A stretch of 64,000 nt of DNA from Adineta vaga. Its lineage: Eukaryota > Animalia > Rotifera. Position 1 is the first letter of the stretch; each line of letters starts with the position of its first letter. Positions 27,751-31,296 of this stretch are shown here, piece after piece. Below the pieces are notes generated by a model. That model was not told where the DNA came from, ran no database searches, and saw nothing but the letters and a program-made list of their open reading frames with translations. Made by a program: the position numbers and the translations under genes. The stretch lies in assembly GCA_021613535.1 (NCBI GenBank), contig CP075496.1:10354001-10418000 (forward strand), given 5' to 3'.

Positions 27751-28558
27751 ATGATTTCTTTAGAAATAATGTTGAAATCTTTATTTTTACTTCGTCAAAC
27801 AACTGTTCAACCAATACGTTATTTACATCTTTCGATACCACATTTTACGGCTGGACAAACTCAATATCATGGTCAACAGGACTCTACATGGTGGGAAAAA
27901 TATGGTTCACATGTTGATCCTGTTCAATCACGTTCCGAATTATTAGATATGGATGATTTAGATGAACGACATTTCCGACCAGTTAAACCAGTAATACCTA
28001 CTTATCAATCATTTTCTTGTTTCCATGATCCAGTTGTATCTCGAGTCATGGGAATTCTATTACGAGACGGTAATCGTGAATTAGTTGAAGAATTAATGCA
28101 TAAAACACTACGAACAATTAAACTGATACAAGTAGGAAAATGGCAACGAGCAACAACTGATGAAGAACGTACTTCAATTGAATGTAATCCCGTTACGTTA
28201 CTTAAACAAGCAATTAAAAATGCCACACCTATTGTTCGTAAGTAAAAATGAATATGAATAAATATTCTATTTTCAAAAAACAAATATTTCGTTAGGTCTT
28301 ACTCGAATAGCAAAAGGTGGAACTTTATATTCAGTACCAATTCCAATGTCACCGATACGTGGTACTTTTACAGCAATTCGTCTGTTGATTGATAGTACAC
28401 ATGATGCTCGACCACATGATCAACGATTTTGGACATTATTTGCCAAAGAAATCATGGATGCTGCACAGAATCAAGGACGAACAATAAAGAAAAAACAAGA
28501 AATTCATCGGAATGCTGAATTAAATCGTGCTTATGCACATTTCAAATGGCAAAAGTAG
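27751..28558 (+). CDS. MRPS7: Mitochondrial ribosomal protein S7 (uS7m)
   Basis: Exons 27751-28237 and 28296-28558. Transit-like N-terminus, FHDPVV, IECNP...AIKNATP, KGGTLYSVPIP, KKKQEIHRNAELNRAYAHFKW. The start could instead be the ATG at 27769. Confidence 0.92.
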
Positions 28559-28699: not shown

Positions 28700-28814
28700 T
28701 GACGTAGCTATTGTCTATTTTTGTACAAATATGTTTGCGTCTAATCATGAAAAGAGCACGAAGTAGATAACAATAGAATAGTGCGTTCCGGATGACGTCC
28801 TTTCTGGTATAAAA
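28700..28814 (+). promoter_or_regulatory. Proximal promoter of the coiled-coil gene: TATA box plus CRE/ATF-like sites
   Basis: TATAAAAGGG at 28808; TGACGTA at 28700; TGACGTC at 28793. A 5'UTR intron (28888-28946, GTAAGT...TAG) ends 2 nt before the ATG. Confidence 0.5.
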
Positions 28815-28948
28815 GGGGCTTGTTCTCAATGAAAAATTAACTATTTCAATACATTAATCTTCTAACGTCGATACAAACGATAAGCAAGTAAGTAAAATGA
28901 TTTGATTAAAACTAGCAATAGAATAACGGTTGATTTTTTTGTCTAGAT

Positions 28949-29867
28949 ATGACTAGTATTATCAATAAATTATTGGGAAAAGACAATGAACATGCACATA
29001 AAACTGAAGTTAAATGTGAAAGTGGATCATGCAGCACAACATTGACTGGTGGAGAAAAATGTGGAACCAAACAAGAATGTAAAACTGAAATTGCTCATGG
29101 TGAAACCTGTGAAAGTCGAACAGTTCAACGTGATGGTGTAAATATCAAATCAACTATTTCAACCGATGGTAAATCAACATTATCATTGGCCAATCAACAA
29201 AAACTCACCGATTTAGTCACTAAACTAGGTATTTAAATCAGCTGTAAATTCGTTTTACATATTACGAATCATTTTTCTTTTAGGCTCAACACATACACAA
29301 ATTGACAAATATGCGAAAGAACAAACGGAACAAATCAACGAACAAATTCAACGTGAAATCGATGAAGTTGTTGGTCGCTCACGTCGTGAACAAGAAGAAC
29401 TTCTTCGCAAAGCCAATGAACACACTGCTGTGATTGATGAAGAATATCGTGCACGATTACAATTGATGGTTGAAGAAATTGATGCTGCTAAAGCCAAACG
29501 AATCTCAGAAATTGAAATCGATTTAAACAATCAACAAGCTGTCATTTTACAAGCAGCTCGAAATGATATTGATGAATTGAATAAGAAAGCTTCTCGACTC
29601 AAAATCGGTGTTTTAGAAGCTGCTGAAGCTAAAGCTGCAAATGATGCTCGTGTAATCACTTCTAACGCTAATTTAGATAAAGCATCAGCTGTTCATCAAG
29701 CTACCGGCACAACAACAATTAAAACTGAAGTAACAGCAGCAGCTACAACTACTGCTGCTACTGGTTCAGCTGCAACAGTTCATGACGCAGCTAGTGGCGC
29801 TAGACATGTCACCGAAACCAAAACAGTTGAAACAACCAAACACCAATCACATGACATCAAAAAATAA
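28949..29867 (+). CDS. 287-aa hydrophilic protein with a central 11-mer amphipathic helix/coiled coil (CAHS/LEA-like architecture)
   Basis: Exons 28949-29228 and 29284-29867, separated by a 55-nt phase-1 intron. No Pro, Phe or Trp. Hydrophobic residues recur every 11 aa across ~105 aa. Both termini are T/K/E/H-rich. Confidence 0.85.
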
Positions 29868-30137
29868 ACGAAAACGACATCAGATACAAAAAATGTTTTT
29901 CTTATATCATGTCGTCTTCTTTTTTCGCTGTATATTTTATTCAAGCATTTTTAGTTAATATTTTCGAATGTCTTGTTTTTATTGAATGGAAATAAACATT
30001 TGAAAGCGTATTGTGTACTTCATATAAGTTGAAACAGATGTTTTCAAGGTCCTACAGTACATTCTTTCAGATCTAATCCACCTGATATAAATAATCTCAG
30101 TTAAATGTTCAAACAAATATATTATCTAGACTAAAAA

Positions 30138-31296
30138 ATGCAGTATACATTTGGTTTAATTGTTCCAGGAGCTATTATTACTTCTATTTTAAATTCTACT
30201 GCGATTATTCGACTCTGTGGTAGTTTACCAGAATTAGGTTCATGGTCGATAGATAAAGCACCAAAACTTAATTTACTTACAAAAGAATTTTATCAATCAA
30301 AGAATTTATTGAATGAACCAAGATTTTATCGAATCGATGTTAATATTTCAAGAGATGTGAAAGAATTCGATTATAAATACATAATTAATGATGTATGGGA
30401 AGGGAAACAAGGAGAAAATCGAGTATGGTTACGCGATGATTGTAAAAATTTAGTAGATGAAATCTATTATACACCAATTGATTACTGGATAGATGTCAAT
30501 AGTGGTGGTATGAAAAACTAAGATGTCTTCATAAATCATTTCTGTTTCTTTTTCTGTTCAGCGACGGATGAAAAGACTCATACATCAAATTATTACAATG
30601 AAATTGTTACGAATCAAATCATGCATTATGGTCGTGTCAATGATCGTTTAAATGTGGGCAGTTGTCCTCGCACATTAGGACACATTAATAACGTCTTACG
30701 TGAAAAATTAGGTGTCACAGCTGTTCTTAATTTGCAAGTTGTTAAAGATATTGAACGTAATTGTAAAAAAATTCTCGGTGATAATCATGTTCCTCAACCA
30801 AACAATGAGTATGATTTAGCAAGTGTAGATATCTTACGAAAAGCGTATGAACAAGCTGGAATTCTGTTCTTATGGGTACCCATAACTGATCTTTCATCAA
30901 CTGGAAGAGAATTAATGTCTCCACAAGCAACTTTAGTTTTGAAAACATTATTAGAAAAAGGTCATAAAGTTTATGTTCATTGTAATGCTGGTAAGTGTAG
31001 ATATAAAATGCAACGCGTATTAATCTATGTTTTTCAGTTGACCTTTGTTCCGAGGTTACATAAAAGATCATTTTTTTTCTTCATATATTTACACTTGATC
31101 GATAAAAAAACCTAAATCAATTGATATTTTAGGAGTTGGTCGAGCATTTGGAATTGTTTGTGCTTATCATCATTTCGTTTTGAAGATGCCATTATCCAAA
31201 GTTCATTATGAGTTAGCTCCAGTACGTTCATGTGGCTTTTTCGATCGTGTATTTTTGGAAAATGCAGAAAAAATATACAAACAAGCATACGAATAA
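30138..31296 (+). CDS. EPM2A: Laforin glucan phosphatase (CBM20 + dual-specificity phosphatase)
   Basis: Exons 30138-30507, 30562-30990, 31133-31296. CBM20 motifs GSLPELGSW, YKY, WEG, PIDYW; DSP motifs VGSCPR, LGVTAVLNLQ; catalytic VYVHCNAGVGRA is split by intron 2. Confidence 0.9.

Follow-up and report, generated by a model that had tools for sequence, protein, structure and literature searches.

A transcribed gene from Adineta vaga, a bdelloid rotifer, encodes a long hendecad-helix protein with a predicted CAHS-like architecture

The 64,000-nt window analyzed here (Adineta vaga, GenBank assembly GCA_021613535.1, contig CP075496.1, chromosome piece C4, positions 10,354,001 to 10,418,000) contains a spliced and transcribed gene at 28949-29867 on the forward (+) strand, the strand on which the parts of the gene described below are located. 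The gene has two coding exons separated by a 55-nt intron, and its 287-aa product is a hydrophilic protein with a predicted architecture that resembles the CAHS desiccation proteins of tardigrades. Coding exon 1 (28949-29228) begins with the ATG at 28949 and comprises codons 1-93 and the initial base of Gly94, the phase-1 GT..AG intron occupies 29229-29283, and coding exon 2 (29284-29867) runs to the stop codon at 29865-29867, giving 93 residues, the junction glycine (GGC) and a further 193 residues. Exon 1 matched, and the exon 2 product was 100% identical to, the NCBI hypothetical protein I4U23_020472 of A. vaga (287 aa; P0001 among the family sequences). Database searches were run per exon, and I4U23_020472 was used for all whole-protein analyses. 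Assembled RNA contigs from four runs belonging to four studies skipped the 55-nt coding intron exactly (4/4 runs compared), as well as a 59-nt intron in the 5' untranslated region (5'UTR); the depth of such contigs cannot rank expression. The spliced 287-aa product that a first-pass annotation had proposed from the DNA letters was thus borne out by both the database protein and the intron-skipping RNA contigs.

The RNA contigs also delimited the transcript. Their cDNA 5' ends fell at 28834-28839, one of them carrying a loose end that resembles a cap-switch adaptor, and a TATA box (TATAAAAG, 28808-28815) lies ~20-30 nt upstream of these ends. A non-coding first exon (28839-28887) is joined to position 28947 in three runs (X1, X6 and X7), which removes the GT..AG 5'UTR intron at 28888-28946. 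Downstream of the stop codon, the 3'UTR (29868-30005, as far as the X1 contig extends) contains an AATAAA signal at 29991-29996.

I4U23_020472 is of a cytosolic, hydrophilic type without a signal peptide (grand average of hydropathy, GRAVY, -0.68) and is richest in T, A, E and K. Residue counts confirmed that it contains no Pro, Phe or Trp, as noticed earlier, and this absence is kept in most of 31 full-length orthologues, low-complexity tails included. Glycine accounts for 4.9% of residues, compared with the >6% that, together with high hydrophilicity, defines hydrophilins according to Garay-Arroyo. A predicted long hendecad helix occupies residues 80-222 (29186-29669, with the intron at 29229-29283 inside), which AlphaFold2, supplied with a 33-sequence alignment, modeled as one unbroken helix with per-residue confidence scores (pLDDTs) between 89 and 98. 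Over the first 125 residues encoded by exon 2, hydrophobic power at a period of 3.67 residues (11/3) was 105.7, where shuffled sequences averaged 11.7, and 0 of 2000 shuffles attained the observed value (p<0.0005). When the helix was written in rows of 11, the hydrophobic series described in the first-pass annotation (I,I,V,L,I,M at 11-aa steps from QIDKY, followed by I,I,I,L,V) was recovered in full, as was the spacing of exactly 22 residues between ILQAA and VLEAA. The resulting hydrophobic stripe is found family-wide, where it covers four neighboring hendecad positions (~100 degrees) that hold conserved, large aliphatics, and it runs nearly straight along the helix because its period is 11/3.

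A repeated 11-mer sequence motif was not found, either by Tandem Repeats Finder (TRF), which reported solely a 12-nt, 2.1-copy repeat in the gene, or by residue-similarity autocorrelation of the helix, in which |z| exceeded 2.5 at lags 11 and 37 alone. The lag-11 signal (z 2.5) is weak and reflects hydrophobic periodicity only. With no 11-mer motif and a conserved stripe of large aliphatics, the helix therefore appears to carry a core of the coiled-coil type and not a repeat of the kind seen in late embryogenesis abundant (LEA) proteins.

On either side of the helix lie conserved segments with predicted strand propensity. The N-flank (residues 55-79, RTVQRDGVNIKSTIS..., 29111-29185) is conserved in at least 70% of sequences at its alignment columns and was modeled by AlphaFold2 as a weak hairpin (residues 55-70, pLDDT 50-55); its alternating V/I-S/T pattern recurs in distant subfamilies. 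The C-flank (residues 223-245, ...HQATGTTTIKTEV, 29670-29738) has nearly invariant T237 and I239, and TTT[VI]I-type motifs are also present in paralogues and in the GC-rich homologues described below; AlphaFold2 rendered it as coil. Beyond the flanks, model confidence was low; a short helix was modeled at residues 2-8. This helix falls within an N-terminal motif, M-[ST]-S-I-I-N-K-L-L-G-K-D (residues 1-12, 28949-28984), a short amphipathic segment that is almost invariant in orthologues and reads MSAIINALFG in paralogues; it may be a candidate targeting, membrane-contact or degron segment. Next comes a variable spacer in which T, K, E, H and C abound (residues 13-54, 28985-29110). It has five Cys in this protein, compared with 0-8 in orthologues, and much His (6-15 per protein), with SHSHSH-type runs in relatives. 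By analogy with what has been reported for some dehydrins, this spacer could have a putative role in metal binding or redox buffering. The C-terminal tail (residues 246-287, 29739-29864) has no Pro and is rich in T, A, S and H. The three-part layout outlined in the first-pass annotation (N-terminal region, long charged helix and beta-prone tail) is therefore recognizable in the AlphaFold2 model, with its 80-222 helix, weak hairpin and low-confidence ends.

Multimer prediction, which had been suggested along with the original description, was carried out for a homodimer of residues 50-245 and compared with three controls. The prediction scored 0.56 against 0.00 for the best control, with at least 67% contact agreement between runs and a partner pLDDT of at least 76. 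The predicted contacts (119-192, 122-188, 111-199 and 137-174) describe an antiparallel coiled coil that extends over residues 85-222 and is centered near residue 155. As a guide to the weight of this result, the same mark was reached by 21 of 30 microbial proteins solved as same-chain pairs and by 0 of 23 solved as single chains, while among eukaryotic proteins 17 of 29 attained it, but only 1 of the 7 that lacked an older solved relative. The dimer model supports binding but does not show it. Separate support for an antiparallel dimer comes from the charge pattern of the helix. Next to the stripe, position f carries a net basic charge in the N half of the helix but a net acidic one in the C half, with the opposite arrangement at position b, and this reversal was present in seven of seven subfamilies, the GC-rich non-rotifer homologues included. 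Such a reversal between the two helix halves is exactly the pattern that an antiparallel dimer requires.

A word-index search returned 61 close relatives of the protein, the named ones coming from A. vaga, A. steineri, Rotaria sordida and R. sp. Silwood1/2. The A. vaga genome holds at least 13 paralogous loci (23-45% identity), and the assembly contains no close homoeologue of the gene, its next best match being 45% identical. When 1.84 billion representatives were searched exhaustively with a profile, 241 clusters were obtained at E<=0.001, of which 161 were at E<=1e-10; the description of the family given here covers ~60 sequences among the best 150 of these 241 matches. All members that carry a species name come from bdelloids (Didymodactylos, A. 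ricciae, A. vaga I4U23_015596 and I4U23_006250, R. sordida, R. magnacalcarata and R. socialis). A common core is found in all subfamilies and consists of a V/I-S/T alternating strand-like segment, a short linker, a helix of ~140 residues and a T-rich strand-like segment. Three further clades derive from a GC-rich non-rotifer eukaryote (L014:116-1477 and L017:6001-6939; also P0143, P0162, P0185, P0079, P0088 and P0150), which has polyadenylated mRNAs, 64% GC, 84-87% GC at third codon positions and a GTGAG-type intron. A quick tree leaves the relation of these clades to the rotifer subfamilies unsettled, and they may reflect either an ancient family or horizontal transfer.

No Pfam family was found at threshold for either exon, for I4U23_020472 or for nine relatives, and weak Pfam matches (Muted, DUF768, Apolipoprotein and others) were rejected as far below thresholds. 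Searches of PDB sequences with exon 2 and with a profile of the orthologue alignment returned nothing meaningful, Foldseek found no match to the predicted fold in the PDB, and an Atlas fold search was uninformative (TM <=0.32). The first-pass annotation had named a confident hit to a known structural family as evidence against its proposal; none appeared in Pfam, PDB sequences or Foldseek. VIA-align recovered generic long coiled coils alone (cohesin, Ndc80, lamin, tropomyosin and ATP synthase stalks) at Z ~8, a range that is non-specific for long helices. No published description of this long-helix family was found in a literature search. Together, these searches support the assignment of the gene to a large, uncharacterized eukaryotic family without a Pfam model. 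The earlier suggestion of an uncharacterized rotifer family therefore holds with regard to the missing Pfam model, but not with regard to rotifers alone, given the homologues in the GC-rich non-rotifer eukaryote. The JGI name "phage host-nuclease inhibitor protein Gam", which is attached to three members (P0041, P0158 and P0236), was taken as spurious and ascribed to coiled-coil composition.

Among characterized proteins, the closest architectural counterpart is CAHS, which has been reported from Eutardigrada only (PMC12887604). In its crystal structure (9RKP), CAHS-8 is a single 101-residue helix that pairs into an antiparallel coiled-coil dimer, made up mostly of hendecads and stutters, and the fibril is built through a second interface on the opposite helix face (PMC12887604). 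For CAHS D, gelation has been explained by antiparallel linker dimers combined with beta-beta contacts between heterotypic termini (PMC10949331). I4U23_020472 (287 aa) and CAHS-8/CAHS D (P0CU50, 227 aa) are similar in size, both cytosolic and very hydrophilic, and both have one very long central hendecad helix (predicted in I4U23_020472), low-complexity tails and a similar T-rich junction after the helix. The strand-prone segments at both ends of the CAHS helix have putative counterparts in I4U23_020472. The antiparallel coiled-coil dimer, which has been solved for CAHS-8, is predicted for I4U23_020472. At the level of prediction, the evidence thus supports a feature-for-feature match between the two architectures. 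The match also has clear limits. I4U23_020472 lacks Pro and Phe, both of which are found in CAHS-8, where F151 stacks with Y126; the helix of I4U23_020472 is longer (~140 residues versus 101); and no second fibril-forming face was identified on it. Compared with the "dumbbell" ends of CAHS, the flanks are conserved and show V/I-S/T alternation, but the hairpin has a pLDDT of 50-55 and the C-flank is coil. Furthermore, in contrast to the restriction of CAHS to Eutardigrada, the long-helix family occurs in bdelloids and in the GC-rich non-rotifer eukaryote, with orthologues in Adineta and Rotaria. The resemblance is one of architecture, which most likely arose by convergence, and not one of demonstrated homology.

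Based on these observations, we propose that I4U23_020472 is a hydrophilic protein whose hendecad helix forms an antiparallel dimer with strand-prone ends and which self-assembles in a manner similar to CAHS, the likeness being probably convergent. We assign this reading a probability of about 50%. According to this proposal, the ~140-residue helices would pair antiparallel over nearly their whole length via the 11/3 stripe. Because the pairing is antiparallel, each end of the dimer would set the N-flank of one chain beside the C-flank of the other, together with the Pro-free low-complexity tails. These heterotypic ends could then let dimers join end to end or side by side into larger assemblies (filaments or a gel) when the protein becomes more concentrated, a higher-order assembly that we infer by analogy with the CAHS D model. 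A role of the family in surviving drying would be a further step of the same inference.

Several observations weigh against this proposal. Paralogues occur in R. magnacalcarata and R. socialis, both of which are non-desiccating, and nothing found here links the gene, which is transcribed in several studies, to drying. The strand character of the flanks depends on low pLDDTs (50-55), and the flanks make no confident contact in the predicted dimer. The helix has no clear second hydrophobic face comparable to the fibril interface of CAHS-8, only a broader Ala-rich surface in its C half. Finally, the dimer score is the model's own confidence, which may echo solved coiled coils and is unproven on disordered chains. 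With regard to drying, an apparent restriction of orthologues to desiccating species was considered and rejected as evidence: the list of named orthologues lacks the desiccation-tolerant A. ricciae as well, and absence from that list is therefore not informative.

The strongest competitor to CAHS-like self-assembly is a coiled coil that serves constitutively as a structural element or scaffold (in the cytoskeleton, in the membrane skeleton or in association with an organelle) and plays no special part in drying, in which case the likeness to CAHS would be generic to long hendecad coiled coils. The size and age of the family (241 clusters) fit this explanation, as do its members in the two non-desiccating Rotaria species and in an unrelated GC-rich eukaryote, and helix conservation is high for a protein that is supposed to be disordered. 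A paralogous subfamily that starts with MGxxxS/T, a typical N-myristoylation signal, and ends in NVG.K.PGQ.C (P0097, P0122, P0123, P0141, P0174, P0176 and P0200, including A. vaga I4U23_006250 and proteins of the non-desiccating R. magnacalcarata and R. socialis) suggests, from its sequence, that the long helix also occurs in membrane-anchored forms, which may be membrane scaffolds. The nearest structures are likewise the generic coiled coils recovered by VIA-align. Among these, the peripheral stalks of ATP synthase and V-ATPase (9itj_U, 7jg5_d, 6fkf_b and 5bw9_J, Z 7.0-7.8) share a long single helix with an 11/3 period, but such Z values are non-specific for long helices, and the stalks have no sequence relation to the family and differ in flanks and context. 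Against a scaffold, extreme hydrophilicity, the lack of Pro, Phe and Trp, and His-rich low-complexity tails are unusual for the cytoskeleton and typical of stress-related hydrophilic proteins, and no known cytoskeletal family was matched in Pfam, PDB sequences or Foldseek. We regard a scaffold as possible but less likely than CAHS-like self-assembly.

A helix with an 11/3 period could alternatively lie on membranes or lipid surfaces, as in group 3 LEA proteins, apolipoproteins, alpha-synuclein and perilipins, and not pair with itself. The period is a hallmark of such helices, and in the N half of I4U23_020472 the stripe has basic edges and the far face is acidic, an arrangement that resembles class A amphipathic helices; the period and the basic stripe edges are shared with the 11-mer helices of exchangeable apolipoproteins, alpha-synuclein and perilipin. 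The conserved short amphipathic motif at the N-terminus and the MG- starts of paralogues, which fit the N-myristoylation consensus, point in the same direction, as does a very weak Apolipoprotein (PF01442) match in one paralogue (E 0.081, 13 bits versus a cut-off of 90); I4U23_020472 itself had no match to this family. However, the stripe edges turn acidic in the C half, which fits antiparallel pairing, and the f/b charge reversal therefore disfavors a uniform membrane-binding face. The core positions are large conserved aliphatics, as in coiled coils, the dimer prediction passed its controls, and the protein differs from apolipoproteins, alpha-synuclein and perilipin in lacking Pro punctuations, 11/22-mer repeats and any family match, with no LEA_4, Apolipoprotein, Perilipin or Synuclein hit at Pfam thresholds.

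Group 3 LEA proteins deserve separate mention as they are known in bdelloids (ArLEA1A/B) and tied to drying (PMC10809525). They share hydrophilicity, an 11-residue periodicity and an amphipathic helix with I4U23_020472. Comparison with the LEA_4 profile (PF02987), which the first-pass annotation had put forward as a check, gave no match for either exon at E<=10, nor for I4U23_020472 and nine relatives at E<=1 (hmmscan). In addition, I4U23_020472 differs from group 3 LEA proteins in having no tandem 11-mer sequence repeats and a single conserved helix that is non-repetitive and carries large aliphatics in its core, and from LEA_4 proteins in its conserved strand-prone flanks. Taken together, a lipid-surface helix appears unlikely.

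True but highly diverged homology to tardigrade CAHS, which the first-pass annotation had offered alongside convergence, is very improbable: the layout is the same, EEYRA can be set beside EAYRK of CAHS-8 (read by eye from the sequence in PMC11524581), NLDKASAVHQATGTTTIKT resembles the T-rich CAHS-8 junction with a Tyr-to-His spacing of 83 versus 82 residues (by eye), and a 224-aa tardigrade cluster ranked second by language-model features in the Atlas (score 0.87, a lead only), but these shared strings are low-complexity and carry no statistics, the family profile retrieved no CAHS chain at E<=10 from PDB sequences (the presence of 9RKP in the searched set being unconfirmed), none of ~60 family members among the best 150 of the 241 matches was CAHS-like, ungapped helix identity to CAHS-8 is ~17% by eye with hydrophobic registers that disagree mid-helix, and the 19-residue self-repeat that defines the CAHS motif is absent, with no autocorrelation signal at lag 19 or 8. 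The CAHS junction string given in the first-pass annotation was itself correct when compared with CAHS-8/P0CU50 as printed in PMC11524581. A 224-aa family member (P0112, contig GC 46%) was considered as a link to tardigrades and rejected; its nearest clusters are rotifer, and the tardigrade lead therefore stays unconfirmed. Of the two origins first considered, the matching layout is retained and convergence is favored over homology.

Bdelloids tolerate drying without trehalose, and how they do so is still open, while CAHS is regarded as a tardigrade invention. Here, an expressed family with many paralogues and no Pfam model includes a member whose computed architecture matches both the solved CAHS-8 dimer and the CAHS D gel model, which makes the family a concrete set of candidates for CAHS-like function. 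On a tentative and more far-reaching view, which we consider doubtful at present, bdelloids and at least one GC-rich eukaryote lineage reached the CAHS design independently, and the family, as cells lose water, assembles reversibly into a network of filaments or a gel that would explain part of trehalose-free anhydrobiosis in bdelloids. Were the candidates to act as CAHS does, this would show at least two origins of the design and would hint that drying has a physical solution of a general kind. Otherwise, the family would still constitute an undescribed and widespread coiled-coil domain, including an orthologue group under an unusual constraint against Pro, Phe and Trp, and would deserve a name.

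Additional features were noted within the family and around the gene. Many of the GC-rich homologues end in EP[KR]S.DA..R[VI], and one of them adjoins a gene that was read, by its N-terminus alone, as eIF3c-like. A paralogue located ~400 kb from the gene (C4:9976811-9977230, L007) has the MSAIINALFG start, strand-prone flanks and a T-rich tail, with an intron elsewhere within the helix. The same-strand neighbors in the window are unrelated genes: upstream, a C-terminal exon of the ribosomal protein S7 family (28346-28558; PF00177, E 2e-11), and downstream, a gene that starts with a CBM20 starch-binding domain (30138-30521; PF00686, E 2.8e-6). Moris et al. 2024 reported a CCAAT/enhancer-type basic leucine zipper (bZIP) factor as the top-expressed gene after desiccation and radiation. 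Upstream of the gene described here, two TGACGT motifs, which resemble the bZIP half-site of cAMP response element (CRE)/ATF type, are located at 28700-28705 and 28793-28798, ~100 and ~10 nt upstream of the TATA box, respectively.

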